NCBI GenBank assembly: GCA_002269645.1 | Contig: NIVC01001945.1 | Location: forward strand, 124,001 to 188,000 | Origin: Macrostomum lignano | Taxonomy: Eukaryota | Length of the DNA stretch: 64,000 nucleotides | Reading direction: 5' to 3' | Part shown: positions 35,582-61,657 of the stretch, piece by piece | Layout of the letters: every line of letters begins with the position of its first letter | How positions within the stretch are numbered: the first letter of the stretch is position 1 | Translations under genes and position numbers: made by a program | Notes under the pieces: generated by a model | Told to the model about the DNA's origin: nothing | Seen by the model: only the letters and a program-made list of their open reading frames with translations | Databases searched by the model: none

Positions 35582-35630
35582 CCCACAAACCCAAGGACAC
35601 GCGCTTCGCGCGTGTCCTTGGGTTTGTGGG
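35582..35630. repeat. Perfect 23-bp inverted repeat with a 3-nt loop
   Basis: CCCACAAACCCAAGGACACGCGC-TTC-GCGCGTGTCCTTGGGTTTGTGGG. Confidence 0.95.
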
Positions 35631-36252
35631 TTTCGCGGAGCTCACTGGGAACTAGTTCCCCTATTTCTATTCTATTCAAAGTTTGAACTGATATGCTATT
35701 TGTCTAGACTTTGTAAGAATCCACTAATATATTCAGTTTATATCTCATTACTCATTTATCATTAAAATTGATAATTGAGGGAAGGAATTCCCCATTTTCA
35801 GAAGACAAAAATATTGTAGGCCAAATAATGAAGTTAGGCCTATTGTAAAGGTGCAAGCTAGATTATAATAATAAAGACATTAAGTTTGTGGGCCATATAG
35901 AAAGTATTTGCAAGCCAGATCTAGCCCACAGACTAAAGTTGTTAATTCCTATTATAGAACCTCTCTTATCTATATTTTGTTGCCCTTCTCATCTATATTA
36001 TAGTCCCTCTTATCTATATTTTTGAGTCTCTCTTATCCATATTATAGTGGCCCCTTTTGTCTATATTATGGTGCCCTTCCTATCTATATTATGTTATCCC
36101 TTTTGTATACATCATGGCACCCCTACTCTTATAGCTAAAATCTACCTCCTTATTTTTATTATTCCTAATCCATTTCTATATTGTACATAGTATGTAATAT
36201 ATAAATTAATATTGCTTTGCATAGTCATCAATTGTCCCTGGTATATATTAGA

Positions 36253-36855
36253 CAAGCTGTTGAAACCCGCGGATTTTGAACCCGGGGAATTCCAATCCCC
36301 GGAACTACTTTTGCATGTATTCTGAAATCTAAGGCCATCTAACACAAACAAATTAATGTTAGTAGGATAGAGGTAGACATAAAATGGAGCACATTCGTGT
36401 AAAATTAGGGTTTGAGGCAAACGTTGATATTGTTTGCTGGGGTACTCCACAGAATGCCAGGCAATGTCTGTCTGACTCTAAAACATGTATTGGCAAACTC
36501 TGGCCTCTCCCTGACTCTCCCTATGTCCCTTGGATCCTTTAAAATTTCTATCGTCTCTCTGTTTCCTTTCTTCTCTCTCATCCCTCGTCTCTCGTCTCTC
36601 CTCTCTCTTCTCTCCTCTCTTCTCTCGTATCTTCCCTCATCTCTCTTATCTCATCTCTTCCCTATTCTTTTCTCTCTCCTCTCCTCTCTCCTTTCTACTT
36701 TTCGTTTTCTCTCTGCTCTCCTCTCTCCTCTCTACTCTCTCGTTTTCTCTCTCCTCTCCTCTCTCCTCTCTCCCATCTTTTTCGTATATTCCCTCATCTT
36801 TCTTCTCTTTCATATCTCTTATCTCATCTCTTCCCTCTTCTTTTCTCTCTCCTCT

Positions 36856-36950
<95 letters not shown>

Positions 36951-38776
36951 CTCTCTCCTCTCCCATCTCTCTTCTCCTCTCTACTCTCTCCCCTCTTCAT
37001 TCTCCTACTTCCTCTTCTCTCTCCCTGTCTCTCCTCTCTCCTCTAGTCTCTGTAATCTCTTCTCTCTTATCTCTTCTCTGTTCTCTCTACTCTCCCATCT
37101 CTCGTCTGTTCATCTGCTCTCTCATCTGTCATCTTTACTCTCTTATACGTTCTCTCACTTATCTCCTCTGTACTCTTCTCTTTCACCTCTTCTGACTCCT
37201 CTCTTTCCTTACTCCTTTATTCTTTTCTCTTCCCTCTTCTATACTCTCTCTCCTCTATTATCTTCTCTCGTCTCTCTGCACTCTCCTCTCACCTTTTTCA
37301 TCTCTCATCTTTACTCTCTCATCTCTCCTTTCATCTGTCTCATCTCTACAATCTCATCTCTTTCCTCTCTCCTCCTCTTCCCTTTACTCTCTCATCTCTC
37401 CTTTCTCCCCTCTTCTTTCACCACTCTCTTATCTCTATCTCTTCTCTTCTCACTCCTCTCTCCCCCTCTTATCCCCTCTCTTCTCTATCCTTTCTACTCT
37501 CTCCTCTCTAATCTCTCCTCTCCTCTTGACCCTCTGTCATCTTCTTTCTGCTCTCTCATCTCTACTCTCTTCTCAATCTTCTCTACTCTCCTCTCTCATC
37601 GATCCTCTGTCTCATCTCTCCCCTCTTCTCACCTTTACTCTTTCCTCTCCTTCCTTTCTCCCCTCCTCTCGCTTCTTCCTCCCTTCTTCTCTGCTCTCTC
37701 CTCACCACTTTTCCCTTTCACTCTCATCTGGCCCGCAGCCATGAGCTGGATTCTTTATCTGGCCTTTGAGATAAAAATCTGCCAATCCCTGCTTCGAAAG
37801 TACTATCATGGGACGTAGTACTATCATGGTTGTTATCATTTCTCATGCTTTAATCACGTCATCTTTCTGGCCAATTAGCAGCCCTGAGAGGAATTTGTGT
37901 ATCTCCATTCTCCAGCTCCACCACCACAGTCTGCAGCAGTCTAACAACCAAGGAAATGCGTATTTCTTAGGAGGCCATTTAAATTTTAAAGTTACCTTAT
38001 GCGAATCTTAATGTTAAAATTTTCATGGTGTAACTAATTTAGTAGGATTGCATTGTAATCAGTTATTCATTAATTTTTCGCTATTTTTATAAACCATCCC
38101 ACATCGCCTTGATTTGCCATCCTTGTTTAACTGCTGCAGACTTGTCTATTCAGAGGACAGTGGTTTGAAATTGAATCTCTCGCTAAACTCTCTCCTCTCC
38201 ACGCCTCTCCACTCGCGGGGTACAGAGAAGGCTATTAAAAAGTTATTCCAAAACACTGTACATTCGCTATGTACATTGAGCCCTATCGCCTGACCCTTCG
38301 TCTGGGGAATGAGTTGGATGAGCGGCAAACAACAGAAAAAGCAGACAAACTTCACATGCTTACAGTTTCTGTCCTGATTGAGATACAGAGTTGAGCCTTT
38401 ACATGTAGGCAGAGAATGAATCAATAAAGAATTGTGTCAAATTTGAAGTCAATCGCTTCACGTGGAGCAAAACTATGGCAGCCGAAAGTTAGGCATTTTA
38501 AAACCTATTCACACCCTTTGCCCAGATCGGGAAAGAGAGGCAGGCGGGCGGAGGTTGGGGTGGTTGCTACGCTGATAAAAAAACAGCCTAACTTTAAAAG
38601 TGCACAGCACCGCTCAGGATTAACTTTGAGACTCGAAATTTTACATGATTGTGCCAAAATAGTTGAAGATTATCTGTGTCAAATTTAAAGAGAATCGGTA
38701 GAAGTGGAGCGGCGCTATGGAGGATTTAATAAAAAAATCGCGCATTTTGAGCAGTTTTTTGTACTTTTAGGTAGGA
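36253..38776 (-). mobile_element. Non-autonomous Helitron, family A body (copy 1, head module missing here)
   Basis: Minus strand starts TCCTACCTAAAAG and ends CCGCGGGTTTCAACAGCTTG followed by host T. Homologous to 55282-58883 and 59064-61419. Contains a CT-rich tract (about 36530-37740). Confidence 0.75.
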
Positions 38777-39120
38777 CTAGCGCCCCCTTCGGGGTGGCCA
38801 ATAAGCAAGGGACGAATCCTTTAAAATGAAAAAAAATTCTTAGGGAGGGGGGCTAGAAATCGAATTCTCATTTTAATTCCAGGCTTATGTACCAATAAAA
38901 CATGCTTGTGCAGAATTTTATAACAGACATTGAAATTCAACAATACTTGCCTTCTTTCAGAGCTACTTCTACCAGTATGCTTCAGTACGCTACCAGTACC
39001 CTTGTAAGCCTTGACATGTCAGCAATCCCCCCCCACAAGCCTTAACATATCAACTCCCCCCTTGACGTCTCAGCGATGCTCCCATAAGCCTTGAAATCTT
39101 AAAAAATCTGTCTACTTTCT

Positions 39121-39150
39121 AACCCTAACCCTAACCCTAACCCTAACCCT
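39121..39150 (-). repeat. Interstitial telomere-type repeat (TTAGGG)5
   Basis: AACCCT x5 on the plus strand. Confidence 0.85.
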
Positions 39151-40099
39151 AAAGCATTGAAATTTCAGTAATTCTCTCTAAGAGTCATTATAGCACTACT
39201 ACAGCATTATAGCGATTCCCTGCAAGCCTCGACATCGTAGGGATTCCCAAATGAATCTCTTAACTTCGACATGAAGCTTCTTTTATTTTTTACATTACGC
39301 CTTTTCTATCAGCGATCCCTCCCGTGAGGAGCCAACAAATAATGTAATAACTTTTTTCCAATAAACTACATGTAGCTTCTGACATTAGCCTTGACATCTC
39401 ATTTATTCCCCCGTGAGCCTTGACATCTCAGCTATAGATAGATAGATAGATAGATTCCCCTCGTAAGCCTTGACATGTCAGCGATGCCCCCCATAAACCT
39501 TGATATCTGAAAAATCCCCTGTTAACCTTGAAACCCGCTAAAATCTAACCCTCAACCCAAACCTGACGTAAACCTAACTTTCACCCAACCTAAAGCCTTG
39601 AAATCACAGCAATTCTTCTTCCCTAAGCCTTGGCATTTAAATGATTCCTTCTTTAAGAATCACAGCACTATAACGATTCCCTCCAAGCTTTGACATCGTA
39701 GCAATTCCCAAATGAATCTTTTAACTTTGACATGACTTTTATTTTATGTATACATAGTGCTTCTTTTCTTTTTTACATGACTCTTCTTCTATCAGCGCCC
39801 CCCCCGTGGCGAGCCAACAAAGAATGCAATAAAAAAACTTAAGTAAAGTACATGAACTTGAAGTAGCTTCTGACTTTTGCTTTAACATCTCAGAAACCCC
39901 CCTGTAATCTCAGTTATTCTCTGTGAGCCTTGACGTCTCAGTAATTCTCCCCAACACAGCACTATAGCTTCATTTAATTTTTACATGACACTTGTTTCAT
40001 GTCTGACATGACGCTTCTTTTGATTTTTACATGACGATTCTTTTATTCTTCCATGATGCTTCTTAATTTTTTAAATGACACTTTCATTAGTTTTTATAT

Positions 40100-41030
40100 G
40101 AGGCTTCTATTATTTTTTCATGACGCTTCTATGTTAACATGACTCTTCTATGCTTGTTTACATGACGCTTTTATGATTGTTTACATGACGCTTCTATGAT
40201 TGTTTACATGACGCTTGTATGATTGTTTACATGACGCTTCTATGATTTTTTACATGACGCTTCTATGATTTTTACATGACGCTTCTATGATTTTTACATG
40301 ACACTTCTATGATTTTTTCATGACGCTTCTATGATTTTTACATGACGCTTCTATGATTGTTTACATGACGCTTCTATGATTTTTTATGACGCTTGTATGA
40401 CTGTTTACATGACGCTTCTATGATTTTTTATGACGCTTTTATGATTGTTTACATGACGCTTCTATGATTGTTTACATGACGCTTCTATGATTGTTTACAT
40501 GACGCTTCTATGATTTTTATGACGCTTTTATGATTGTTTACATGACGCTTGTATGATTGTTTACATGACGCTTCTATGATTGTTTACATGACGCTTGTAT
40601 GATTGTTTACATGACGCTTCTATGATTTTTTATGACGCTTTTATGATTTTAACATGACGCTTCTATGATTTTTTACATGACGCTTCTATGATTGTTTACA
40701 TGACGCTTGTATGATTGTTTACATGACGCTTGTATGATTTTAACATGACGCTTCTATGATTGTTTACATTACGCTTCTATGATTGCTTGCATGACGCTTC
40801 TATGATTTTTTATGACGCTTTTATGATTTTAACATGACGCTTCTATGATTTTTTTACATGACGCTTCTATGATTGTTTACATGACACTTGTATGATTGTT
40901 TACATGACGCTTTTATGATTTTAACATGACGCTTCTATGATTGTTTACATTACGCTTCTATGATTGCTTGCATGACGCTTCTATGATTTTTTACATAACG
41001 ATTCTATGATTTTTTACATTACGCTTCCAT
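40100..41030. repeat. Minisatellite of about 22-23 bp (ATGACGCTTCTATGATTGTTTAC)
   Basis: About 40 tandem variant copies visible. Confidence 0.95.
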
Positions 41031-41469
41031 AATTTTTTTTGTCTTGGCGTTAAAAAGCTTTAATTAAAAAAAACTCTACTCTCTAAAAATTCGAACCATC
41101 GTCCCTGCATTTAGCAGTTTAGTCTGTTTACCTCTAGGCTAGCTCTCATAAATTTTAGTCATTACCCCTAAATAGAAAATATTCCCAAGACAGCAAGCAT
41201 CCCCCAGTAGCAAGCATCCTTTAATACTCCTAGCAAGCATCTACCCAGATAGCAAGCATCTGCAGATAGCAAGCATCTGCAGATAGCAAGCATCTTGCAG
41301 ATAGCAAGCATACCCCAAATAATGTAGAAGCATCCTTCCAGATAGCAAGCATCCCCCAAATAATGTAGAAGCATCCTTCCAGATAGCAAGCATCCTGCAC
41401 ATAGCAAGAATCCCTAAATAGCAAGCATCCCTGGATAGAAATAATCCTATACATGTAGCCAAGCTTATC

Positions 41470-43940
41470 AAGCGCAGTAATCCTTGGCTATCGAGTGCAG
41501 TAATTCTTGGTTTGCCAAGTGCAGTAAGTAATCCTTGGTTTATTAATAGCAATAATCCATGGCTTATCGAGTGCAGTAAGTAATCCTTGGTTTATTAATA
41601 GCAATAATCCATGGCTTATCGAGTGCAGTAATCCTTGGTTTATTAATAGCAATAATCCATGGCTTATCGAGTGCAGTAATTCTTGGTTTGCCAAGTGCAG
41701 TAAGTAATCCTTGGTTTATTAATAGCAATAATCCATGGCTTATCGAGTGCAGTAATCCTTGGTTTATTAATAGCAATAATCCTTGGCTTATCGAGTGCAG
41801 TAATCCTTGGTTCGGGTTGCATTAATCCTTGGTTTATTAATAGCAATAGTCCTTGGCTTATCGAGTGCATTATTCCTTGGTTTATTAATAGCAATAGTCC
41901 TTGGCTTATCGAGGGCAGTAATCCTTGGTTTATTAATAGCAATAATCCTTGATAAATCAAGTGCAGTAATCCTTGGTTTATTAATAGCAATAATCCTTGA
42001 TAAATCAAGTGCAGTAATCCTTGGTTTATTAATAGCAATAGTCCTTGGCTTATCGAGTACAGTAATCCTTGGTTTGCCAAGTGCAGTAATCCTTGGTTTA
42101 TTAATAGCAATAATCCTTGGCTTATCGAGTGCAGTAATCCTTGGTTTATTAATAGCAATAATCCTTGGCTTATCGAGTGCAGTAATCCTTGGTTTGCCAA
42201 GTGCAGTAATCCTTGGTTTATTAATAGCAATAATCCTTGGCTTATCGAGTGCAATAATCCTTGGTTTATTATTAGCAATAATCCTTGGCTAATCGAGTGC
42301 AGTAATCCTTGGTTTGCCAAGTGCAGTAATCCTTGGTTTATTAATAGCAATAATCCTTGGCTTATCGAGTGCAGTAATCCTTGGTTTATTAATAGCAATA
42401 ATCCTTGGCTTATCGAGTGCAGTAATCCTTGGTTTATTAATAGCAATAATCCTTGATTAATAAAGTGCAGTAATCCTTGGTTTATTAATAGCAATAATCC
42501 TTGGCTTATCGAGTGCAGTAATCCTTGGTTTATTAATAGCAATAATCCTTGATTAATAAAGTGCATTAATCCTTGGTTTATTAATAGCAATAATCCTTGG
42601 CTTCTTGAGTGCAGTAATCCTTGGTTTATTAATAGCAATAATCCTTGGCTTATTGAGTGCAGTAATCCTTGGTTTGCCAGGAGCAATAGTCCTTGGTTTA
42701 TCGAGTGCAGTAATCCTTGGTTTATTAATAGCAATAATCCTTGATTAATCAAGTGCATTAATCCTTGGTTTATTAATAGCAATAATCCTTGGCTTATTGA
42801 GTGCAGTAATCCTTGGTTTATTAATAGCAATAATCCTTGATAAATCAAGTGCAGTAATCCTTGGTTTATTAATAGCAATAGTCCTTGGCTTATCGAGTGC
42901 AGTAATCCTTGGTTTGCCAAGTGCAGTAATCCTTGGTTTATTATTAGCAATAATCCTTGGCTTATCGAGTGCAGTAATCCTTGGTTTGCCAAGTGCAGTA
43001 ATCCTTGGTTTATTAATAGCAATAATCCTTGGCTTATCGAGTGCAGTAATCCTTGGTTTATTAATAGCAATAATCCTTGGCTTATCGAGTGCAGTAATCC
43101 TTGGTTTGCCAAGTGCAGTAATCCTCGGTTTATTAATAGCAATAATCCTTGGCTTATCGAGTGCAGTAATCCTTGGTTTATTAATAGCAATAATCCTTGG
43201 CTTATCGAGTGCAGTAATCGTTGGTTTATTAATAGCAATAATCCTTGGCTTATTGAGTGCAGTAATCCTTGGTTTGCCAGGAGCAATAGTCCTTGGTTTA
43301 TCGAGTGCAGTAATCCTTGGTTTATTAATAGCAATAATCCTTGATTAATCAAGTGCATTAATCCTTGTTTTATTAATAGCAATAATCCTTGTCTTCTTGA
43401 GTGCAGTAATCCTTGGTTTATTAATAGCAATAATCCTTGGCTTATCGAGTGCAGTAATCCTTGGTTTGCCAAGTACAGTAATCCTTGGTTTATTAATAGC
43501 AATAATCCTTGGCTTATCGAGTGCAGTAATCCTTGGTTTATTAATAGCAATAATCCTTGGCAATTATCGAGTGCAGTAATCGTTGGTTTGCCAAGAGCAA
43601 TAGTCCTTGGTTTATTAAGTGCAGTAATCCTTGGTTTATTAATAGCAATAATCCTTGGCTTATCGAGTGCAGTAATCCTTGGTTTGCCAAGTGCAGTAAT
43701 CCTTGGTTTATTAATAGCAATAATCCTTGGCTTATCGAGTGCAGTAATCCTTGGTTTATTAATAGCAATAATCCTTGATTAATAAAGTGCATTAATCCTT
43801 GGTTTATTAATAGCAATAATCCTTGATTAATCAAGTGCATTAATACTTGGTTTATTAATAGCAATAATCCTTGGCTTATTGAGTGCAGTAATCCTTGGTT
43901 TATTAATAGCAATAATCCTTGGCTTATGGAGTGCAGTAAT
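41470..43940. repeat. Composite minisatellite of 48-bp and 21-bp units (GTGCAGTAATCCTTGGTTTATTAATAGCAATAATCCTTGGCTTATCGA), about 2.5 kb
   Basis: Tandem units visible; they are the source of the spurious LLLLINQG ORFs. Confidence 0.95.
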
Positions 43941-44974
43941 CTAAGTGTTTTTATTTAGCTTTTAATAAAAAATTTTACACTACTACTTTTCAGACACTAA
44001 TCTACTAATCATACACTTAGATTCGAACCCAGGTTGCTGCATTAGCAGTCTGGTCTGTTCAGCTCTAGGCTAGCTCTCATCGAAGTTATCAGTGAATTTG
44101 TACCACTTAAATAGTTCAACACTCACACAAAGTCAGGTAGAGTAAAAAGTCACGAAGCAGTTATGAGTTATGACATAATCAATTTCTTAGGCAAGTCAGT
44201 ACCAGTCTCTATAAAAGTTAACAATATGGTTACGCAATATAAATTGAGTACTGTGCTATGCTTTCACACTCAACGCTGTGACGCAATTCAATTGAGTGTC
44301 TTGTGTATTGTGATGCAATCTATTTTAGAATCAGAATTCAACCAGTCAGTTTTTCTGCTAGCATTCTTACAATGCATTTCAATGCTTGACCTTTGCAAAA
44401 AAGCATGTTTTTCGAATATTTAATCCCTTTAACATTGAGCAATTTCTTAGCCAAGATGCATGTACCGTCACGGAAAAATTTCTGATCGAACAGTGCAAGT
44501 TCGAAGAAAATCGGTCCAGCCATTCAGGAGAAAATCGATTTCGTACAAGCAAGCAAGCAAGATTTTCATTTTTAGTATATGGACTAGCAATCTTCGCCCC
44601 CCCTTGGGGGGCATCTGTATAGAATCTCTGTTCTCTACAAGTAACAAAAAGACAGCCAAATAAAGCCTTGACAAAGACAACAGACAAACTGCTCAAATAA
44701 AGTGTAATGCAAAAAGAAATCATCCCAAGACAGCAAGCATCCCCCAGATAGCAAGCATCCCCAAGATTGCAAGCATCCCCCAGATAGCAAGCATCCCCCA
44801 GATAGCAAGCATCCCCCAGATAGCAAGCATCCCCCAGATAGCAAGCATCCCCAAATAGTAAGCATCCACCAGACAATAAGTAGCTAGTGCAACAATTTCC
44901 TTAGCTCTATAGTGGCTCCTTTAAAATTGGCATGACGCTTACTTTTACGTTTGAAATTGTGTATCTTTTATGTT

Positions 44975-45890
44975 TGACATGGTGGCTTTTTAGTGTTTGA
45001 CATGATGGCTCTTTAATGTTCGACATGGTGGCTCTTTAATGTTTGACATGGTGGCTCTTTAATGTTCGACATGGTGGCTCTTTAATTTTTGACATGGTGG
45101 CTCTTTAATGTTTGACATGGAGTCACATATATGTTGGACATGGTGGCTCTTTTATGTTTGACATGGTGGCTCTTTAATGTTTGACCTGGTGGCACCTCAA
45201 TGTAATGATGGCTCTTTAATGTTTTACATGGTGGCACTTTCATGTTCGACATGGTGGCTCTATAATCTTCGACATGGTGGCTCTTTAATGTTCGACATGG
45301 TGGCTCTTTAATGTTAGACATGGTGGCTCTTTAATGTTTGACCTGGTGGCACCTCAATGTAATGATGGCTCTTTAATGTTTTACATGGTGGCACTTTCAT
45401 GTTCGACATGGTGGCTCTATAATCTTCGACATGGTGGCTCTTTAATGTTCGACATGGTGGCTCTTTAATGTTAGACATGGTGGCTCTTTAATGTTTGACC
45501 TGGTGGCACCTCAATGTAATGATGGCTCTTTAATGTTTTACATGGTGGCACTTTCATGTTCGACATGGTGGCTCTATAATCTTCGACATGGTGGCTCTTT
45601 AATGCTCGACATGTTGGTCCTTTTATGCTTGACATGGTGGCTCTTTAATGTTTGACATGGTGGCTTTTTTATTTTTGACATGGTGGCTCTTTTTTAATGT
45701 TTGGCATGGTAGCTCTTTAATGTTCGACATGGTGGCTCTTTAATTTTTGACATGGTGGCTCTTTAATGTTCGACATGGTGGTCCTTTTATGCTTGACATT
45801 GTGGCTCTTTAATGTTCGACATGGTGGTCCTTTTATGCTTGACATTGTGGCTCTTTAATGTTAGACATGGTGGCTCTTTAATTTTTAACG
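44975..45890. repeat. 22-bp minisatellite (GACATGGTGGCTCTTTAATGTT) with a 157-bp higher-order repeat, plus an 18-bp GATAGCAAGCATCCCCCA array at 44720-44870
   Basis: The diagnostic variant TTGACCTGGTGGCACCTCAATG recurs at 45181, 45338 and 45495. Confidence 0.9.
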
Positions 45891-47022
45891 TTTGTTAAAC
45901 GTTTTTGACGTTTGTAACGCAAGAATTTTTTGTATTTTTTTGCTAATAAACTTGAAAAGTACAAAGTGAAACTTATGAACATGGCATTAAAAGTACAACC
46001 GATATGTCACGTATACATAGCGTGTGCAATGGCTGCATGTGACCAGATGAGTTCCTTTAATACTCTACGTTAGTCTATAGTCGCAGCCCTCGGATTCGCT
46101 CATTCCTGCCCTCAAATCCATAGTCAGAACAATCAGTTCGGCTCTATTTCCTTAGCCTTTGCGCTTTGCCACAGACTATTCATATTTGTTTCGCCAAAGA
46201 TTAAGAAATGAAGTAAGACAAAAGCTTCATTCAGGGCCTTCGCCTTAGTTAAAATTGACATCTTGTGAGTTTCGTATATTATTCAACTTTCAATATATGG
46301 AAGACGAAGGCCCCGTCGCAAGTTGATGCAAATCGTTTTTTATGAGCTTACAGTTCACAGTTGTTACAGGTGACTTGAGATATTTTTGATTTTTGAAAAA
46401 AAGACTGTCACTCGTAGTTTGCGTAAAAATCCATATACTAAAATTCACTCTAATGTTAAGTTTTTGCGAACCTTGGAAAACTAAAAACAAAATTGTTTCG
46501 TCTTTTGCATAAATTTGCGATATAAAATAAGTAAAGTTTTTACACGAATTATAATGAAATTTCAGGGGAAAAATAAAAGACAAAATTAACTGCTCATCAA
46601 AGATTGAATTCATTAAAAGCAGTGCAAAAGAAGGTTTGTTTCAAAAGTTACTTTCGGCTAATATGAAATTGCCTTAAAATACAAATTAACTGTAAAGTGC
46701 AAATTGACTGTAAAAATTTATACAATGAATAAAATAAGCCTAATTGAGCTTCAACATAAAGTTCATCAGCTATTAGCTCGTACTCACTGCCATGCAATAT
46801 CTACGCTTCGTTAGAAATGAGGTTGGGGCAATAAGTTTCCTGCGATTCTTTTAGGAATGAGAGCTATTGACAGCTATTGCTTTAGAGAATGAGAGCTATT
46901 ACTTAAGAGCCATGGGGAAATAATTATTCTATTTTTCCTTAAAAATAACTGAATATACTTTCTAGCCTTTTGCAATAATAAGGAAAATTATTGCTCACCC
47001 CTCATTTTTTACGATAAATAAA

Positions 47023-50000: not shown

Positions 50001-53000
50001 TGAACAGTTTGTCCACTGTAAATCCGCCCATCTCAGGCGATAGTCTGCGGTACAGTGGGTAGCCAGTATCGCTGGTCAGCGTCACCTGCTGGAATTCTTT
50101 AGGAAAGCTCTTGCTGCATTCGCCATTCTCCATGCAAGGGCATGCTGGATTGTCCTTGCCGCAGGGGCCATGGATCATGTGCGTCTTCACCAGCTCATAC
50201 AGCACGGGCTGCTGCTCTGGGTCCGGAATCTCGGCAGACACGATGTTATCGTATCGGTCCGGAGTCACTCGCTGACCGCTCACGAGCCACAGCAAAAAGT
50301 GCACATGGGGAAGACCTGGAGCGTCAAAAAAGTAGAAAAAATCACAAATCTTTGTAAATTTAAATTTAATAAATATTAAAAGTTTGATTCTTGCAAGTCA
50401 GAATTTATACTCACCACGCTTCTGGTACTCCAGTGAGCAAACGTGAGCGGTCTCTTTCCCATAGCGCTTGGTCAACTGGGCCAGCAGAGCTTTCTTCTTC
50501 ATTTCAAAGACTCGGCTAACAATGTCGGGCCGGTCTTCTGCCCGCTGTCCAGGCAGCAGCTGGGCGCTGATCTCCGGCCATTTCGGATTGCACGTTGCGG
50601 TGACAAACAGGTCCGGCTTACCGAACTTGTGAACATAGGTCATAGCGTCCTGTAGCCTCTCCATCAGGTACCTTGGCCCGCCAACGAAGCTCGAAGACAG
50701 AAGCACATGCGCGGGCTTGCCTATGTCACTCGGATCTCTGTCGGTAGACCTGCCATCAGCCGCAAACAAAGCGTCCCGCAGACCGCTATACGTCTCGCTG
50801 CGCAGGTCCTGCTGATGGGTCCGCAAATACAGCAGCCTCTCTGCCTCAATCTTGGCACACATGTCCACCAAGTACTGCTGAAATAATCTTCGGCCATAGT
50901 GCAGCACACTGAACTGGCCCGCTCGCACCATGATTTCGCTCGCATAATACTTCATGGGCGTCAATTTCTTGCCATTACTCATCAGCAACTCCGGGTGCCA
51001 GCCATCTTCGCCATTCGGGAACAGCAGCACATACTCCAGCGGGTCGTATGAGCGGTGCGTCTCACTGATTCGCTGGGAACCGCCTCCACGCAGCTGAATC
51101 ACGACGTCCCGACTGGCCGGTGTGTTCTCATTGTCCTCAACGATCAGGATACCGACCTCGTTCGCCGTAGGCAAGTTGTAGCGCCTGATTTCAAACGGAT
51201 TTTGTGGGATACAAAGTCTGTACAAATTGGATAATTGGATACTTTATTACGCAAAATATGTTATTAAAGTGTCTTGCAGACATACCGAATGTGTTCCCCA
51301 GATGGTCGACGGTCAGGGTGAATCACGATTCGCGCATCTCCCAACTCCGGATCTTGGCTGATTCGATGAGCGACTGCCCTCAGGCTGCGGACATAGCCGT
51401 TGCACTCGTGAAGCAGCGTCTGCAGCAGCTCCAGTAGCTCCGGCTTCACCTTCTGGCTGAGACTCTGGCGGCTTTCAAGTTCGCGATCATTGAAATACAC
51501 TTGCCAGCCATGGGGCTCAGCTGAATCTTCTGCAAACAGCGACGCCGTGTTGTGATGCAACTGGCCGCTGATGATGAAGCTGGGACACCAGCCTGGCACC
51601 AACCGCAGTTTGGCACCCAGCGATGTCAGGTGCAGCGCCGAGTTGTAACTTCTAATGTTGGTCAGGAACTCGGCACTCAGTCTGTGCCGCCCCAGGTACA
51701 GATCCGCCAGCACTTGAGGCACGGTGCGGCTGGGTAGCTTTACCTTGCCTTTGGCGCAGCAGAAATTCCTCGTCTCAGAGCACCAAAGTAATGCACCGCA
51801 TTGGTCGCATGCTCTGTCCATTGGGCCACAGTTATGGGCTGGCGCTTCAGGCCTGATAATCCGTTCTGGCCTGTGATTGGAAGGATTAGGATTAGGAAGG
51901 ATTAATAGCAAATAGTTTTCCCGGTTAATCTTTCATTTTACAAAAAAAATATTAGAATAAAACAACTTGAGTTCGATGACAAATAAATTATGATGACCAG
52001 TCATACCAATGACCTACCTCTCTTGAGCAGGTCTTGCGCCAAAATGACCTGCACTCTGCTGAGTTAGTCTTGGCTCCTCTTCATCTACAATGGGCTCAGA
52101 AACTGGAATCGGATTAGCAAATCGCAATGACTCATAATGCTCATGACGCAAAAGAATTCGGACGATTGCAATCGGTGGCTGCAAAGGGGACATACAGTAC
52201 TGCAATACACTGCCATTTTCTTGATAAATTACCAGATCAACATTAAAACAACGGCTTAAAAGCGGAACAACTTCATCAGGCACATATGTGCCTTCAGAAA
52301 AAGATGAATCAACAATGAAATCAGCATTTTCTGGCAAAACAAAGCCTTGTTCAATCAATTCTGGCATAATCTGCACTACACGGCTCGTCAGCTCGTGTCT
52401 TAAAGATGCTGCATCGGTCTCAAGTGGAGTGCCCTGCAACTGGTCACAGATTGCATGAAAAAAACAGTTCCCATCACCAGGAATTCGAATTATGCGCAAC
52501 GCATCAAAAGGTACCACAGACGGTGTGGCCAACTCACTACTATCAAACCTGGAATAGAGGAAATAAAGATTTAGTATATTTGGATTATACACAACTTTAT
52601 TTGGCGGTTCTTAGAATAGTGAAGAATATTTTTATGCCATTCTACATTCTTACAAACCAGTCTAAAATGTAATTGCATTATAAACAAAGATTCTTCGAAA
52701 ACCATTTTCATCAGTAAAAAATGCTTAACCGATTCTCATAAATTAATATTGTTATATTAAATACCTATCTCATAGATTTAAGATTCTTCGAAGCCGACTC
52801 ACACATATAATATTCTTAGAAACAGGCTTCAAAACTTAATATTATTAGAAACCGAATTTATTTTAATTGTAGATTCTATCTAAAATACTTATCTCGTATG
52901 TATAATTCCTGGAAGCCTATCTAAAAAATATGAGAAAAATTGCGTTAAAAGACTTAGAAATGGGCTCTAGTTTTTCAGTATAAGCCTATGTACCAATTAA

Positions 53001-53688
53001 ACAACAACTACAATACAAAATACCCATAAAAGACTAAACATGAACACAACGGGCACATTGATTATTATCATTTAACGGTCACAGAATGTTAAGAATGATC
53101 ACAGAAATATATAATAGCTCAGATTAAGACGTCATCCTACCTGCTAACCGACACTCCTCGACGGCGAATTTGTTCGGCTTCGATTCGAGCTCTTCGTTCA
53201 TCTTCGGTTTCTGAAGCGCGTCGCTTCTCTGCACGAATTCTGTCTGCAGATCTACGCTCTTCACGCTGAGCGTCTGTTTCAGTTGCTCTTTGCTCAGCAT
53301 TCTCCTGTCGGAGTCTCGTCAGGCGCTCTTCTCGCTGAGCATCGGTTTCACTTGCTCTTCGCTCAGCCTCCTGCTGTCGGAGTCTCGTCAGGCGCTCTTC
53401 TCGCTGAGCATCGGTTTCACTTGCTCTTCGCTCAGCCTCCTGCTGTCGGAGTCTCGTCAGGCGCTCTTCTCGCTGAGCATCGGTTTCACTTGCTCTTCGC
53501 TCAGCCTCCTGCTGTCGGAGTCTCGTCAGGCGCTCTTCTCGCTGAGCATCGGTTTCACTTGCTCTTCGCTCAGCCTCCTGCTGTTGGAGTCTCATCAGGC
53601 GCTCTTCTCGCTGAACGGCACTCTCTTGCTGACGCTTCTTCTTGGCATCTCTGCTCTTCTTCAATGCGCTGGTGCCACGTCGAGCCAT
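47023..53688 (-). CDS. Helitron RepHel protein, 9 exons, about 1753 aa: STPR-like repeats, OTU protease, Zn finger, Helitron-like N/HUH Rep, PIF1-type SF1 helicase. Exons 53688-53141, 52548-52018, 51870-51286, 51184-50415, 50315-49973, 49885-49585, 49462-48441, 48339-47943, 47787-47023
   Basis: Motifs GDGNCFFHA...HYESL, CDQCGA...CCAKG, PDLFVTATCNPKWPEI, EYQKRGLPHVH, YVIKYLLKG, DAPAGTGKT, WDEISM, GDFRQLLPV, TIHKSQGQSL, HGQLYTALSR. All 8 introns preserve the frame; 7 are GT-AG and intron 5 begins GG. Confidence 0.92.
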
Positions 53689-55122
53689 ATTGGAATTCGA
53701 ATTGAAAAATAAGAATTTTGAGTGATAATGAAAAAATAGTATGGGGGTTGTGTGCGAGAAAAGAGTATGGTATGAAATCTATCATGTCACGCGTTTTAAA
53801 CTCATCAACCACACAACCCCAAAAAGCTGGACACCATTTGTACACTGTCGTCAGACTGTCAGTGTGTACAGCAAGCCTAAATTCTGTCTCCAACACCCGC
53901 CTGCTAATTGGTCAGGACTTTTTTATTATTCAATACTCCCTCTAAAACACCTTGGCCCAGTACTGTAATGAATTTTTAAGCCTAAGGCTAACTCTCCCAT
54001 GTTAAAGGATTGAGATAAATTTTCTGAAGGAGGCGCAAATCTCAGTAGCCAATGTACATCTCTGTGGCATTTAATAATAATTCTATTTATCGATGGATGG
54101 TATGCACTTTTTATGATACGACGGTCTTACTAAAACGTACTTTAGCCTATAGATTGGGGGTCTTGAATATCGCATATGAAAATGCAACTCAGGTTTCTTT
54201 AGCTTTAGCTTGCGATGTGAATCGATTAAATATACTCGTACGCTCGTATGTGTTTCACTCTCTCACTCTCCCTCTTTCCAGCTTTTAAAGTTAGTTTGTT
54301 AATTGTGCACGTGAACATTTTATAATATACATCTCTTCTCGCAGTGTACATTTATAATTCTCTAGAGTGGCGACAAAAAATACTAATTTACTGGCGCTGC
54401 CTAGTTTAATTCCAGTCAGAATGGCTCGCAGTAGAAAGTTCTGTTGACCCTTGCAGAAAGGCATGTGTGTTATCGAATATTCGTTTATATTCTATGCTTT
54501 ACATGAGCTACTTATGCTTGAAATGAAACATTTGGTTCTTGGTTCTGGAGTAAGCCTCGACATCTCAGCAATTCCCCGACTAAGCGTTTTACATGACGCT
54601 TCTTTTACTCGTATGTTTAACGCGATCGAGATGAGCACGAAGCAGAGATGAACACGAAGCAGTTATGAGAGTTATGACATAATCAATTTTTCAATCGTTC
54701 AGTATCAGTTCTAATTAAAGTTAACAATATGGTTACGCAGTCTAAATCAGGTCTCGTGCTATGTTTCCACAGAGTGTTTTCAACACTGTGACGCAATTCA
54801 AGTCGGAGTTACAATTCAGTTGTGATGCAATCTTTATCACAATCGGAATTCAGCCAGTATAGGTTTTTTCTCTAGCATTCTTACAACTCATACAATGCAT
54901 TCCAGGTCGAAAGAGCTGCTTGACCTTTGCAAAAAAGCATGTTTTTCGAATATTTAATCCCTTTAATATTGAGCAATTTCTTAGCCAAGATGCATGTACC
55001 GTCCCAGGAAAATTTCTGATCAAATGGTGCAAGTTTGAAGAAAATCGGTTGAGCCGTTTTTTCTGAAATCTATCGCATAGCTAGATAGATAGATACAGAC
55101 AACTCATTTTTAGTATATGGGA

Positions 55123-55281
55123 AGACTCAAATTTAGGAAATTAAAAGGTAGCCTAAGACATTCTCCGTAGTAAATTTAGGGTGGGTGTAAAGTTTGGTGT
55201 AATTTGGTTGAGCGGTTTGGGAGTCCATAGCGATCAAAATTGTCCACACACAGACAGAGTTTTGATTTTTATATGTAGAGA
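55123..55281 (-). mobile_element. Isolated Helitron 5' head module (family A head)
   Basis: TCTCTACATATAAAAATC...CTGTCTGTGTGTGGAC...GAGTCT; same module as 58884-59063 and 61420-61598. Confidence 0.75.
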
Positions 55282-58200: not shown

Positions 58201-59063
58201 TGATTTGCCATCCACTACGTTAAACTGCTGCAGAGTTTGCCTATACAGAGGACAGTGGTTAGAATTTCTCACTAAAATGTTATGGATGGCTAAACGTAGC
58301 CTCTCAACGGGGGGTGCAGAGAAGGCCATAAACAAAGCTATTCCAAAACACTGTACATTTTCTATGTACATTCAGTCCTATCGCCTGACCCTTCGTCTGG
58401 CTCTGGGGAATGAGTGAGTGAGTGGCACAAACAACAGAAAAAGCAGACAAACTTCACATGCTTACAGTTTCTTTTTCGGTTGAGTTACAGAGTTGAAACT
58501 TTACATTTAGATAGAGAATGAGTTAATAAAGAATTGTGTCAAGTTTGAAGTCAATCGCTTTACGTGGAGCAAACTTATGGCAGCTGAAAATTAGTCAATT
58601 TTGAAACCCTTTTACACATCTGGGCCCAGATCGGTATCGGAAAGAGAGGCAGGCGGGCGGAGGTTGGGGTGGTTGCTACGCTGAAAAAAACAGCCTAACT
58701 TTAAAAGTGCACAGCACTGCTCAGGATTAACTTTGAAACTCGAAATTTTACACGATTGTGCCAAAATAGTTGAAAATTGTCTGTGTCAAATTTGAAGAGA
58801 ATCGGTAGAAGTGGAGCGGCGCTATGGAGGATTTAGTGAAAAAATCGCGCATTTTGAGCAGTTTTTTGCACTTTTAGGTAGGAAGACTCAAATTTAGGAA
58901 ATTTTAAGGTAGCCTAAGACATTCTCCGTAGTAAGTTTAGGGTGGGTGTAAAGTTTGGTGTAATTTGGTTGAGCGGTTTGGGAGTCCATAGCGATCAAAA
59001 TTGTCCACACACAGACAGACACACACACAGACACACACACAGAGTTTTGATTTTTAGGTCGTA
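55282..59063 (-). mobile_element. Non-autonomous Helitron family A, copy 2 (head plus body; carries a hAT MITE insertion)
   Basis: Homologous to copies 1 and 3 and ends CAACAGCTTG. CT-rich tract with CTCTCTCTGCTTCCCC repeats at about 55850-56230. Confidence 0.75.
56894..57833. mobile_element. Second copy (opposite orientation) of the ATCCCGGGAT-rich hAT element
   Basis: TIR TAGGGATTCCAA and perfect 8-bp TSD CTCTCAAC (56886-56893, 57834-57841). Internal TIR ends at 57114. Confidence 0.93.
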
Positions 59064-59501
59064 CAAGCTGTTGAAACCCGCGGATTTTGAACCCGGGGAA
59101 TTCCAATACCCGGAACTACTTTTGCATGTATTCTGAAATCTAAGGCCATCTCTCTCGTCCCTCGTCTCTCCTCTCTCCTCTCTCCCCTCTTCTCTCGTAT
59201 CTTCCCTCATCTCTCTTCTCTTCATTCTCTCTTATCTCATCTCTTGTCTCTTCTTTTCTCTCTCCTCTCCTCTCTCCTCTTCTCTCTCCTCTCTCCTCTC
59301 ACCCCGTCTTCTCTCTGATCTTCATTCTCCTTTCTATTCTTTTCTCTCTTCTCTTAACTCTCTCCTCTACTCTCTACTCTCTCCTCTCTTCTCTCGTCTC
59401 TTCCCTCACCTCTTTTCTCTCTCGTTTTTGCTTTCTCATCTTTCCTTTCTCTTCTTTTATCTTTTCTCTCTTATCTCTTCTCATTTCTCTCTGCTCCCCC
59501 T

Positions 59502-59579
<78 letters not shown>

Positions 59580-59608
59580 ATCTCTTCTCATTTCTCTCTG
59601 CTCCCCCT

Positions 59609-59697
<89 letters not shown>

Positions 59698-61598
59698 TAT
59701 CTCCCCTCCTCTCTCTACTCTCTCCCCTCTCCATTCTCCTCTTTCCTCTCCTCTCTTCTCACTCACTTCTCTACCTTTGTCTCTCCTCTCTCCTCTCGTC
59801 TCTGTAACCTCTCCTCTGTTCTCTCTACTCTCCCATCTTTTATCTGTTCACTCTCGTCTCTGCTCTCTCATCCCCCTCTTTAATCTGGCATCTCTGTCTT
59901 ATATATTCTCTCACCTCTCTCCTCTGTACTCTTTTCTTTCCCCTCTTTTGACTCCTCACTTTCCTTTCTCCTTTCTTCTTTTTTCTTCTCTTCCCTTTTC
60001 TATACTCTGTCTCCCTCTCTTCTCTCACTCCACTCTCCTCTCTCCGTTATCTCTCATCTCTCATTTCTCATCTCTCCTTCCACTTCTCTCATCTCTAAAA
60101 CCTTAGAGATGTAGAGATGTATCTTTATCTCTTCTCTCTTCCCTTTACTCTCTCATCTCTTCTTTCACCTGTTTCCTCTCTGCTGTCTCCTCTCTCCTCT
60201 CATCTGCAGCTCTCTGCTCTCTCATCTCTCATCTCTCCTCTCGCTTTTCCTCTCTCCCCTCTTCTCCCCTCTCTCTCATCGTCCTCACCCCCTTATCTCT
60301 CCTATTATCTTTTATCTTTTCTTTTATCCGCTCTGTCGCCTCTCCTCTCTTCGAATCGTCTATTCGTTCTTCTTTCCACTTTCATCTGCCCCTCAGCTAT
60401 GAGCTGGATTCTTTATCTGGCCTTTGAGGTAAAAGTATGCCCATCCCTGCTTGGAAAGCCAGTTTGTGGGATGTAGTACTCTCATGGTTGTTCTCATGCT
60501 TTGATCACGTCATCTTTCTTGCCAATTTGCAGCCCTGAAAGGAATTTGTGTATCTTCAGCTCCACTGCAGTCTTCATCGGTCTAACAACCAAGGAAATAC
60601 GCATTTCTTAGGAGGCCATTTAAATTTTAAAGTACCTTTAAGAGAAAACCTAAATTTCCATGGTGTGTCTAATTTAGTAGGGTTGTATTGCATTGCATCG
60701 CTTTTTCATAAATCTTTCGCTTTTACAAACCATGCTGAATTACCTTGATTTGCCATTGCCATCCACTGTTAAACTGCTGCAGAGTTTGCCTATACAGAGG
60801 GCAGTGGTTAGAATTTCTCACTAAACTGTTATGGCTAAACGTAGCCTCTCCACTCTCGGGGTGCAGAGAAGGCTATAAATAAAGTTATTCTAAAACACTG
60901 TACATTTGCTATGTACATTCAGTCCTATCGCCGGACCCTTCGTCTTCATGGGGAATGAGTGAGTGAGTGGCACAAACAACAGAAAAAGCAGACAAACTTT
61001 ACATGCTTACAGTTTCTGTTCTGATTGAGTAAGAGAGTTGAAACTTTACATTTAGACAGAGAATGAATCAAAGAAGAATTGTGTTAAGTTAGAAGTCAAT
61101 CGCTTCACGTGGAGCAAACTTATGGCAGCCGAAAGTTAGTCATTTTAAAACCCATTTACACCCTTTGCCCAGATCGGGAAAGAGGCAGGCGGGCGGAGGT
61201 TGGGGTGGCTGTCTCGCTGAAAAAAACAGCCAAAATTTAAAAGTGCACAGCGCCGTTCAGGATTAACTTTGAGACTCGAAATTTTACACGATTGTGTCAA
61301 AATAGTTGAAAATTGATTGTGTCAAATTTGAAGAGGATCGGTAGAAGTGGAGCGGCGCTAAGGAGGCTTTAGTAAAAAAATCGCGCATTTTGAGCAGTTT
61401 TTTGCACTTTTAGGTAGGAAGACTCAAATTTAGGAAATTTAAAGGTAGCCTAAGACATTCTCCGTAGTGAGTTTAGGGTGGGTGTAAAATTTGGTGTCAT
61501 TTGGTTGAGCGGTTTGGGAGTCCATAGCGATCAAAATTGTCCACACACAGACAGACAGACAGACAGACAGACAGAGTTTTGATTTTTATAGTTAGAGA
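59064..61598 (-). mobile_element. Non-autonomous Helitron family A, copy 3
   Basis: Host A|TCTCTAACTATAAAAATC, a (CTGT)n microsatellite, and 3' CAACAGCTTG. Confidence 0.8.
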
Positions 61599-61657
61599 TG
61601 ATATATTATTAATTTTGGGCAATATTATATATATAATAATATATATAATGTGGCATA

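Follow-up and report, generated by a model that had tools for sequence, protein, structure and literature searches.

A train of Helitrons, 25,346 bp in length, all in the same orientation and with nucleotide-exact joints, occupies a single A^T site (a caret marks a joint throughout) on the minus strand of Macrostomum lignano contig NIVC01001945.1. The train lies at positions 36253–61598 of the window, by which we mean the whole 64,000-nucleotide stretch that was analysed (contig positions 124001–188000). When read 5' to 3' on the minus strand, eight modules are seen in the order X1-C1-X2-C2-X3-B1-B2-C3 (Table 1), and these correspond to five or six elements. Module C is a non-autonomous body that starts with TCCTACC and ends with a hairpin followed by CTTG, and X is a leader of 159–180 bp which possesses its own TC 5' end and lacks both a 3' hairpin and CTRR. 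The most economical reading, which in our judgement has about an even chance of being correct, is a tandem of X-C elements in which the third unit was split by B1 and B2, by way of RepHel nicking at resident 5' ends.

Table 1. Modules and associated features of the train (window coordinates)
Feature	Position	Strand	Characteristics
Host A	61599..61599	-	5' side of the train; equals A of the empty paralogous site in L010
X1	61420..61598	-	179-bp leader; 5' TCTCTAAC..TAAAAATC, (CTGT)n microsatellite, end ...GAGTCT; no GC hairpin or CTRR
C1	59064..61419	-	Non-autonomous Helitron body; 5' TCCTACCTAAAAG, (GA/TC)-rich low-complexity interior
X2	58884..59063	-	Leader with aberrant 5' end TACGACC
C2	55282..58883	-	Non-autonomous Helitron body, broken by a hAT-type element
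hAT-like insertion in C2	56894..57833	.	Non-autonomous, 940 bp; TIRs TAGGGATTCC.../...GGAATCCCTA, 8-bp TSD GTTGAGAG; strand unassigned
X3	55123..55281	-	159-bp leader; directly after CTTG of C2 and directly before B1
B1	44584..55122	-	Autonomous Helitron, 10,539 bp; 5' TCCCATATACTAAAAATG
RepHel gene of B1	47023..52592	-	Eight exons, seven modelled short GT-AG introns; 1,594-aa stop-free predicted product
B2	38777..44583	-	Non-autonomous relative of B1, 5,807 bp; 5' TCCATATACTAAAAATG
C3	36253..38776	-	C-type body with no adjoining X; TCCTACC right after CTAG of B2, end ...CAGCTTG
Host T	36252..36252	-	3' side of the train; equals T of the empty paralogous site in L010

Joints and target site of the train

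The initial annotation had described Helitrons from at least two families that abut exactly within one common A^T site, and this description, including the identity of the units as genuine Helitrons, was upheld. The inner joints that it listed were all found on the minus strand, namely CTTG^TCTCTAC at 55282/55281, CTAG^TCCATAT at 44584/44583, CTAG^TCCTACC at 38777/38776 and the non-canonical CTTG^TACGACC at 59064/59063. Three further exact joints were located at ...GAGTCT^TCC (X^C twice and X^B1 once), and at its outer edges the train reads host A61599^TCTCTAAC (61598) on the 5' side and CTTG^T36252 on the 3' side. A Helitron 5' terminus (TC[C/T]...TAAAA[A/G]T) stands directly downstream in 8 of the 8 inner and outer joints, as the proposed insertion at 5' termini demands, and the upstream partner is variable, being host A, CTTG, CTAG or the GAGTCT of X. 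The 5' ends begin with TC (TCTCTA in X1 and X3, TCCTACC in C1–C3 and TCC(C)ATATAC in B1 and B2), with the exception of X2 (TA), the start of which resembles the C-type TCCTACC with two mismatches. Since the window contains 4,763 AT dinucleotides, several independent insertions exactly on termini would not be a chance pattern. The similarity between B and C that is detectable by BLAST is confined to the first ~20 nt, and zero-spacer joints between a 3' end and the 5' TC of an unrelated family are present at C2^X3-B1 and at B2^C3.

A search for the empty allele had been suggested, and a vacant site is indeed present in a paralogous M. lignano locus (L010; NIVC01000001.1), the flanks of which are 88.7–89.9% identical to those of the window, with the outer flanks colinear. 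The empty site reads ...GCCCAAAATTAATAATATATTA^TTTAATATATATCATAGACAATTG, and the window flanks, once joined, read ...GCCCAAAATTAATAATATATCA^TCTAATATATACCAGGGACAATTG and align to it without a gap; hence one A^T holds the entire array, and the target was not duplicated, a result that applies to the train as a whole and not unit by unit. Owing to the TCT at both edges, the insertion boundary is fixed from this locus only to within 3 nt. A second contig (L011), 99.6% identical, carries the same B2^C3 and C3^host joints. The allele states seen were thus full (the window and, over the portion it spans, L011) and empty (L010), with no intermediate.

These contigs also bear on whether a long-read assembler had chained Helitron copies of different loci. 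The number of units in repeated X-C blocks is a typical assembler error; nevertheless, misjoins arise in shared homology and not at the exact termini of unrelated sequences, two of the joints recur in the independent contig L011, and both outer flanks are colinear with the paralogous locus. We therefore regard an artefact as extremely improbable.

The autonomous element B1 and its relative B2

B1 contains an ORF with STPR repeats, an OTU-Rep-PIF1 gene and satellites of 18 and 23 bp, and near its 3' end a 7-bp GC hairpin lies 12 nt before the terminal CTAG (z = -4.5). Removal of the seven modelled introns leaves a stop-free coding sequence of 4.8 kb; two of the seven are backed by motifs, as their removal restores QKRG-LPHVH and PIF1. 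Pfam comparison of the predicted product identified Helitron_like_N (1–191 of 191, E 4e-51) and PIF1 (1–221 of 223, E 3e-61), and the HUH motif (HVH) and the KYVIKY tyrosines were also present, so that both a Rep and a PIF1-like helicase are represented. The N-terminal OTU domain is a weak match (E 0.001) below the cut-off of Pfam. The closest proteins are M. lignano Helitron helicases with 74–89% identity. As modelled, the RepHel of B1 looks intact, and on account of the stop-free predicted coding sequence B1 looks young. This fits a late arrival of B1 within an older array, in which X-C units differ from one another by ~8% and the hAT-like insertion was already present in C2; a second copy of this insertion was found at window positions 13080–14003 (97.6% identical, TSD GATTAGAC).

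B2 shares with B1 a stretch of ~370–400 bp near the B2 5' end that is 80% identical. It further contains satellite arrays of 24/48 bp and 23 bp, and ends with an imperfect hairpin followed by the terminal CTAG.

X leaders and C bodies

The 3' ends of C1–C3 possess a 7-bp stem, CCGGGGA with TCCCCGG, 25 nt before CTTG, which is a variant and not CTRR; in C1 the hairpin is CCGGGTA..TCCCCGG (one stem mismatch), followed by ...CAGCTTG. The X modules have no subterminal GC hairpin, so that X cannot have arrived alone via a canonical 3' end. Two tandem 5' termini, that of X and that of C (or B1), are found 159–180 nt apart, X being without a 3' end of its own. The X modules are mutually 96–98% identical, closer than the C bodies, which may reflect gene conversion or a separate history.

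The third copy had been reported to lack a ~250-bp block. A block is absent there, and it is the module X of 159–180 bp; the third X, though, is present 16 kb upstream, before B1. Another block of ~260 bp, near the 3' end, is absent from C1 and not from C3. An alternative in which X forms the 3' portion of the C before it, giving a C+X unit by read-through, was also weighed and rejected. It proved no more economical, since X1 would still have to stand alone and C3 to lack an X, and it is also disfavoured by the start of X being a typical Helitron 5' end.

Divergence among the units

When X3 and C3 were concatenated, the resulting sequence was colinear with X1C1 and X2C2. Over X and the first ~570 bp of C, K2P distances were 0.078–0.088 for all three X-C pairs. 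Over the following 600 bp, C3 differed from C1 and C2 by a K2P of 0.24, with 0.076 between C1 and C2 and ~0.11 between the flanks and the empty paralog. Because 0.24 exceeds the ~0.11 of the flanks, at least C3 is an independent arrival and not a copy made in situ. The claim that one rolling-circle burst is insufficient was borne out by this value and by B1 and B2, which are unrelated to C beyond ~20 nt. Near-identical, equidistant copies of one donor, as rolling-circle replication would leave, were not what we found, and B1 and B2 are interposed between C units.

The same distances weigh on amplification after insertion, in which one X-C would have inserted and been multiplied in place by unequal crossing-over or segmental duplication, with the B elements added by chance and the exact X-C joints being mere repeat-unit boundaries. 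For X and the ~570 bp of C, which are equidistant at a K2P of ~0.08 and hence below the ~0.11 of the paralog, the timing would allow a triplication in situ once the paralogs had split. The 24% of C3 over 600 bp, however, exceeds what could have accumulated in place; moreover, unequal crossing-over cannot make a CTTG^TC joint from a single copy without a prior dimer, and the exact termini at B1, B2 and C3 are left unexplained. We consider this course of events quite improbable.

Further comparison revealed that the C-3'^X-5' joint is duplicated (55120–55369 versus 58881–59151, 86%). As the X-C composite is also present three times, some joints of the train were inherited and do not reflect independent targeting; the C-3'^X-5' joint could have been inherited from a dimer instead of being made twice.

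Origin of the train

We infer the order of events, the split of the third unit and nicking at left terminal sequences as the targeting step. A first layer would have consisted of three non-autonomous X-C elements in tandem, with the 5' termini TCTCTA of X and TCCTACC of C 160–180 nt apart, and in a second, later layer B1 and B2 would have split the third X-C exactly at its internal 5' terminus (...GAGTCT^TCCTACC). RepHel would nick the 5' boundary of the left terminal sequence of a resident Helitron, the cleavage that starts transposition, and the incoming copy would be joined at this nick. The 3' CTAG or CTTG of that copy would thereby lie flush against the resident TC, irrespective of which base is upstream (host A, the final T of X or the final G of another element). 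Repeated rounds would build a co-oriented train, in which any upstream 5' end together with any downstream 3' end would be a potential composite. A point against the split is that it places the insertion of the B elements at T^T and not at the canonical A^T. Strict accretion at the 5' side, at host A and in the order C3, B2, B1, solo X3, X2C2, X1C1, is possible as well, but then an X must have inserted alone and a C must lack its X.

The train fits integration at resident 5' termini, although a single locus does not establish a preference for them. More tentatively, and with some doubt on our part, RepHel may home to left terminal sequences such that any recognised resident left end is nicked, including the internal T^TCC, and a copy is integrated with the A^T rule irrelevant. 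Trains would then be a regular product and a chimera factory (X-C, X-B), and X (160–180 bp) would be a mobile piece between two 5'-end cleavage sites.

Another possibility is that blocks, be it X-C, a dimer XC-XC, the pair B1-B2 or the 25 kb in its entirety, formed elsewhere and were brought into the A^T by one or few transpositions. Such blocks would come from read-through of a 3' terminus into a neighbouring Helitron or from more than one round of rolling-circle replication, the ends used being the 5' end of X1 and the 3' end of C3. X-C is certainly a mobile composite, as its boundary GAGTCT^TCCTACC recurs in independent units; the C-3'^X-5' joint was duplicated together with its flanks; only full and empty states were seen; and the defective 5' end of X2 would favour read-through of an XC1-XC2 dimer. 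End-bypass and compound Helitrons are on record (PMC4224331, PMC3288121, PMC5148889), and tandem arrays are regarded as a signature of rolling-circle replication (PMC5876387). On the other hand, the origin of the heterotypic exact joints is merely shifted to another locus, the three C units cannot be a concatemer from one donor, given their mosaic divergence (0.24 for C3 versus 0.076 K2P), B1 is apparently much younger than the X-C units, and no second copy of any heterotypic joint turned up outside the train, either across ~43 kb of distinct M. lignano DNA (L008 and L010) or across the remainder of the window, a very small sample. Arrival as a composite is, in our view, somewhat unlikely.

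Searches for further copies

RepHel matches led to seven Logan contigs (L001–L007) with a relative that is 77–81% identical and ends short of both termini, and to one M. lignano contig (L008) holding only a fragment of another family. BLAST comparison of all termini with L008, L010 and the remainder of the window yielded no matches other than (CTGT)n microsatellites. A looser expression for the 5' end gave extra matches in the window (7929 on the minus and 1298 on the plus strand), the number of which fits chance; that at 7929 has no downstream Helitron 3' end. A metagenome scan with the 20-mer of the C 3' end returned one match in a GC-rich bacterial contig, which we attribute to chance as there was no similarity beyond the 20-mer. 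A protein-database search with a 517-aa concatenation of stop-free junction-spanning translations gave no match at E <= 1, non-coding M. lignano reading frames of this type being absent from the records; an exact look-up of the LTR-retrotransposon pol of the window returned its own contig alone, and scans of the entire window against Rfam and for tRNAs gave no matches.

Comparison with known systems

The mechanism put forward in the initial annotation is not a new idea (Du et al.). Both this kind of arrangement and the mechanism have been described before in maize, bats and fungi. Publications already cover heterotypic CTAG^TC joints, a model involving host A plus the resident 5' T, tandem arrays and elements with multiple 5' termini. 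In the maize r1 region, back-to-back heterotypic Helitrons are joined as CTAG^TC, and a PCR comparison of inbred lines proved that occupancy was stepwise (Du et al., 2008, BMC Genomics 9:51; PMC2267711). As in the train, two unrelated, co-oriented Helitrons meet there with CTAG directly before the next TC and no host A between them. The maize case comprises two elements, whereas ours comprises five or six elements and eight modules over 25 kb in a flatworm, with one partner an apparently intact autonomous element and one class of joint (T^TCC) at an internal 5' terminus; in contrast to the PCR evidence in maize, the train is known from full and empty states alone.

Pritham and Feschotte reportedly found, in 2007, homotypic tandem Helitron arrays in Myotis lucifugus, which they are said to have attributed to rolling-circle replication. 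Homotypic tandem arrays of plant centromeric Helitrons have been attributed to the same process, according to the citing passages in PMC2267711, PMC5876387 and PMC5148889. Such arrays share with the train precise joints of 3' end and 5' TC without host A and co-oriented units, and by analogy the X1C1-X2C2 pair could be a dimer of the rolling-circle type. The train differs in combining different families and in same-family units that are mosaic (K2P 0.08 to 0.24) and not near-identical copies of one donor.

In Fusarium (FoHeli) and Metarhizium, elements with multiple 5' termini, and insertions located at 5' ends or close to them, were reported in 2016. In the model proposed, an element inserts near a resident 5' end, and the segment between the leftmost 5' end and the first 3' end is then mobilised; three tandem copies in Metarhizium were explained by repeated 5'-end insertion or by rolling-circle products (PMC5148889). 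Maize Helitrons of the helA type also have multiple termini (PMC3288121). X-C and X-B1 resemble these elements in their two tandem 5' termini 160–180 nt apart, and the fungal model fits X-C. The published elements are fungal Helitron2-type or maize helA, whereas the X of the train is 96–98% conserved and precedes two families at an identical position. Lastly, circular intermediates of Helraiser contain a precise RTS-LTS (3'-end to 5'-end) joint (Grabundzija et al., 2016, 2018; PMC5876387). The CTAG^TC joint of the train is chemically the same as this circle-closing joint of RepHel, though in the circle both ends belong to one element and in the train the ends are chromosomal and belong to different elements.

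If resident 5' termini are indeed preferred, one mechanism would explain three puzzling traits of Helitrons, namely exact head-to-tail joints without host A, elements with several 5' ends, and easy formation of chimeras and sequence capture. With its empty paralogous site and apparently intact autonomous element, the locus is a clean natural example in a laboratory animal in which transgenesis is possible, and it extends the pairs or triplets of maize, bats and fungi to flatworms and to a longer chain.

Boundaries and empty site of the train

The Helitron train is a real feature of the contig and was located correctly by the initial annotation; each of its junctions could be read on the minus strand, and every unit is co-oriented, as had been proposed. 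The same annotation placed the whole array in a single A|T site and suggested a search for the empty allele. We found this site empty in L010 (NIVC01000001.1), a paralogous M. lignano locus which carries the g1 copy of the protein-disulfide-isomerase (PDI) gene and whose flanks, on either side of the train, match the window at 88.7–89.9% identity. The empty site, ...GCCCAAAATTAATAATATATTA|TTTAATATATATCATAGACAATTG, aligns without gaps to the window flanks joined across the train, ...GCCCAAAATTAATAATATATCA|TCTAATATATACCAGGGACAATTG; hence positions 61598 to 36253 (25,346 bp) form a single insertion block, which lies in one A|T and has not duplicated its target. From the L010 locus alone the boundary is placed to within 3 nt, because TCT is present at both edges; the canonical placement follows from the internal junction CTTG|TCTCTAC. 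The g3 copy of PDI is found in L011 (NIVC01003193.1), a contig that, in a 5.1-kb comparison, is 99.6% identical to the window. Its B2/C3 and C3/host junctions are identical to those of the window; thus, both joints are present in two independent contigs.

Modules and joints of the train and other features of the window
Feature	Position	Strand	Sequence or remarks
Host 5′ joint	61599/61598	-	...AATAATATATCA|TCTCTAACTATAAAAATC
X1	61598-61420	-	
C1	61419-59064	-	
C1/X2 joint	59064/59063	-	...CAACAGCTTG|TACGACCTAAAAATC
X2	59063-58884	-	
C2	58883-55282	-	
hAT-like element in C2	56894-57833		8-bp TSD GTTGAGAG
C2/X3 joint	55282/55281	-	...CAACAGCTTG|TCTCTACATATAAAAATC
X3	55281-55123	-	
B1	55122-44584	-	
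STPR-repeat ORF of B1	53137-53688	-	183 aa
RepHel gene of B1 (predicted)	47023-52592	-	
B1/B2 joint	44584/44583	-	...GGGGGGGCGAAGATTGCTAG|TCCATATACTAAAAATG
B2	44583-38777	-	
B2/C3 joint	38777/38776	-	...GAAGGGGGCGCTAG|TCCTACCTAAAAG
C3	38776-36253	-	
Host 3′ joint	36253/36252	-	...CAACAGCTTG|TCTAATATATACC
PDI exon	27523-28731	-	100% identity to BOX15_Mlig005000g2
LTR retrotransposon	21375-26005		235-bp LTRs 99.2% identical; 858-aa pol and 505-aa integrase ORFs; 5-bp TSD GGGAG
Second hAT-like copy	13080-14003		97.6% identity; 8-bp TSD GATTAGAC
LINE / non-LTR retrotransposon	3336-7187	+	1,283-aa ORF

Genomic setting

The window covers 124001-188000 of contig NIVC01001945.1 (assembly GCA_002269645.1) of the free-living flatworm M. 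lignano. The PDI gene is present in three copies in M. lignano, and L009, a locus fetched via the PDI protein, corresponds to window 39282..17443 at 100% identity. Other repeats also surround the train. Among these, the LTR retrotransposon has a clean empty site in the near-identical contig L011 (~13278-13294); the two contigs, whether haplotigs or recent duplicates, are polymorphic for this recent insertion. A 307-aa ORF1-like reading frame (2413-3336) is situated upstream of the LINE ORF, and the LINE 3′ flank (7284-7484) is a repeat with two further copies, at 83–87% identity, in L008, an M. lignano locus containing a fragment of another Helitron family. A 1,447-bp tandem duplication (30100-31948) is indicated by the 100% identity of two 402-bp segments, at 30100-30501 and 31547-31948; in L011 it is represented by a single unit only. 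At 58 bp from the 5′ end of the train lies a 1.45-kb element (61657-63103) flanked by 284–287-bp direct repeats (95.8% identical, with TG...CA ends) and containing GC-rich 28-bp tandem repeats in its interior. This element is missing from L010 and resembles a small, TRIM-like insertion of LTR type that is independent of the train.

Modular composition of the train

Self-comparison and end alignments resolved the train into eight modules (X1-C1-X2-C2-X3-B1-B2-C3) rather than four or five units. The recurrent family A is not a single body: it is bipartite, consisting of a short leader, X, and a non-autonomous Helitron body, C. The X leader (159–180 bp) displays a typical Helitron 5′ start, TCTCTA[AC/CA]TATAAAAATC, a (CTGT)n microsatellite and a 3′ end that is invariably ...CCTAAATTTGAGTCT; a GC hairpin and CTRR were looked for in X and neither is present. 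C lies directly 3′ of X and possesses its own 5′ end (TCCTACCTAAAAGTGC), a long (TC/GA)-rich interior, a 7-bp hairpin (CCGGGGA/TCCCCGG) and a terminal ...CAACAGCTTG. The TCC end of C is a real boundary, because C3 starts exactly at TCC after the CTAG of B2, and because B1, not C, follows X3 at the same point (GAGTCT|TCCCATATACTAAAAATG).

All 5′ ends of the train have in common a loose consensus, TC[C/T]..TA..TAAAA[A/G]T. As a regular expression, it found 7 of the 8 termini directly, those of C1 and C2 three bases upstream of the boundary, and missed that of C3, which has TAAAAGTA as its box; beyond the train, it recovered only copies of a hAT-element repeat and a few hits consistent with chance. 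The first seven bases of X2 (59057-59063, minus strand), TACGACC, differ from the X1 and X3 ends (TCTCTAA/TCTCTAC) and match the C-type TCCTACC at five of seven positions. The 5′ end of X2 looks like a mutated C-type rather than an X-type end, and may be a hybrid that arose at the shared TAAAA box by template switching or recombination. Among the C bodies, C1 is without a ~260-bp block directly upstream of the terminal 81 bp (59064-59330 region), which is kept in both C2 and C3 (alignment columns 2550-2850), and C2 is longer because a 940-bp hAT-like element has inserted into it. The latter belongs to a non-autonomous element of ~930 bp with TIRs TAGGGATTCC.../...GGAATCCCTA and internal, CCCGGGAT-rich subterminal repeats; the identity between its two copies in the window points to a young family.

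From its sequence, B1 (10.5 kb) is predicted to be an autonomous Helitron. Its minus-strand ORFs, from 52592 to 47023, match Helitron_like_N, PIF1, Pif1_2B and UvrD_C_2, and weakly OTU (E 0.001, below Pfam's cut-off). The breaks between ORFs fit seven modelled short GT-AG introns (~70–155 nt), one of which brings ...EYQKRG and LPHVHFLLW together and recreates the HUH motif, while another (GTGAGT...TGCCAG, 101 nt) makes ...AHST continuous with FKIPI, as they are in P0001, an uninterrupted relative; the remaining five are modelled only. With these seven introns, the RepHel gene yields a 1,594-aa stop-free product with KYVIKY tyrosines, full-length Helitron_like_N (1–191/191) and PIF1 1–221/223, and this model allows an intact OTU-Rep-PIF1 protein of ~1,600 aa to be read. 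The best relatives of the exon at 48437-49462 (minus strand) are from M. lignano, at 74–89% identity; no protein at or near 100% identity is on record, and the gene is unannotated in the NCBI record. A relative of the B1 RepHel (77–81% identity) occurs in Logan contigs from other sequencing runs (L001-L007), with ORF breaks mostly at the same places as in B1, the PIF1 intron excepted. Upstream of the RepHel gene, between the B1 5′ end and the OTU exon, is an ORF that consists of 69-bp tandem repeats (Pfam STPRs, E 1e-18) and may be either an accessory gene or a piece of a host gene that was captured. Satellites of 18 and 23 bp precede the B1 3′ end, where a strong 7-bp GC hairpin (z = -4.5) is located 12 nt before CTAG. 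B1 is probably an active autonomous element.

B2 (5.8 kb), a relative of B1, is non-autonomous and contains satellites. It has a B1-like 5′ end and, close to this end, 80% identity to B1 over ~370–400 bp. The 18-bp repeat is common to both; B2 further contains arrays of 24/48 bp (~51 copies of the 48-bp unit) and 23 bp (47 copies), and terminates in an imperfect hairpin and CTAG.

A separate observation concerns L010 13339-21830, where homology to the window ends at ...CCCATATT and a different insertion follows. Within this cut locus, it includes a Helitron_like_N gene at L010 18062-21437, which is 64% identical to the B1 protein in the Rep region and 33–51% identical in the other matched segments.

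Divergence of the units and proposed assembly of the train

Divergence was obtained from a three-way alignment of X1C1, X2C2 (with the hAT removed) and X3+C3, and K2P was found to vary along the X-C units. Over X and the first ~570 bp of C, K2P is 0.085 for C1 versus C2 and 0.078–0.088 for C3 versus either; over the next 600 bp, the values are 0.076 and 0.24; and over the last 81 bp, they are 0.051 for C1 versus C2, 0.012 for C3 versus C1 and 0.038 for C3 versus C2. The X modules alone differ at only 3–5 of ~125 positions. The initial annotation considered one rolling-circle burst insufficient, and this is borne out by the 24% divergence of C3 over 600 bp, against ~11% between the flanks of the occupied locus and the empty paralog. 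This segment cannot have originated in place after the train appeared, and a single rolling-circle burst is thereby excluded; C3, at least, is a separate arrival or a recombinant. X1C1 and X2C2, ~8% apart, could be an old dimer. The long stop-free exons of B1 indicate that it is much younger than the ~8% between X-C units.

We prefer, with moderate confidence, a split-unit model in which tandem X1C1, X2C2 and X3C3 would have been present first, and B2 and B1, singly or paired, would have separated X3 from C3 by inserting precisely at T|TCC, the internal 5′ terminus. One type of event would then explain an X without C, a C without X and the counts of three and three, as well as an apparently intact B1 inside an older array. 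Strict 5′ accretion at the host A, in the order C3, B2, B1, solo X3, X2C2 and X1C1, is possible and has every event at a canonical A|T that the host A forms with the first T of the resident. However, it requires an X-less C and the insertion of a solo X without a 3′ end, and all modules upstream of the young B1 must be still younger, among them X2, whose end is defective, and C2, which bears the hAT insertion. Under the preferred split of X3C3 and under accretion alike, each new joint forms where a resident Helitron end has its 5′ boundary. RepHel could plausibly nick the resident left terminal sequence, as it does at the start of transposition, and the incoming strand would be joined there. 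The original interpretation, insertion at resident Helitron 5′ termini, is a reasonable one that is unproven and already has published precedents.

The whole train, or blocks of it, may instead have formed elsewhere through end-bypass or multi-round replication and then have entered the site as composites. X-C is certainly a composite, the C-3′|X-5′ junction occurs twice, flanks included (55120-55369 versus 58881-59151, 86%), and full and empty alleles are the only states reached. No further X, B or C copies were found by a junction-ORF search, in related loci or in a metagenome scan.

Comparison with published Helitrons

Precise head-to-tail junctions without a host A are described for bat Helitrons and interpreted there as rolling-circle tandem repeats (Pritham and Feschotte, 2007, via PMC2267711), and tandem arrays have been cited in favour of rolling-circle transposition (PMC5876387). 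In maize, a CTAG|TC joint was reported between two unrelated Helitrons (Du et al., 2008; PMC2267711); PCR on inbreds revealed none, one or both of them, and the authors proposed insertion at the AT of the host A and the resident 5′ T, or at a non-canonical G|T. Multiple 5′ termini and an insertion 2 bp upstream of the 5′ end of another copy were described for Fusarium Helitrons, along with three tandem copies in Metarhizium and a model for chimeras that begin at the leftmost 5′ end and stop at the first 3′ end (Chellapan et al., 2016; PMC5148889). Descriptions also exist of maize Helitrons with multiple termini that originate from nested copies (PMC3288121), and of compound bat Helitrons that use the ends of two copies (PMC4224331). 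Given these precedents, both this kind of structure and the proposed mechanism are already published; our literature search found no paper linking Macrostomum and Helitron trains. The train differs from the published arrays in (i) its flatworm host, (ii) the length and heterogeneity of the chain, (iii) a conserved X leader that precedes two families at the identical base, and (iv) an internal 5′ terminus that apparently served as target. The train is chiefly of value as a clean case open to testing, offering both an empty site and a predicted, probably active autonomous element, B1.
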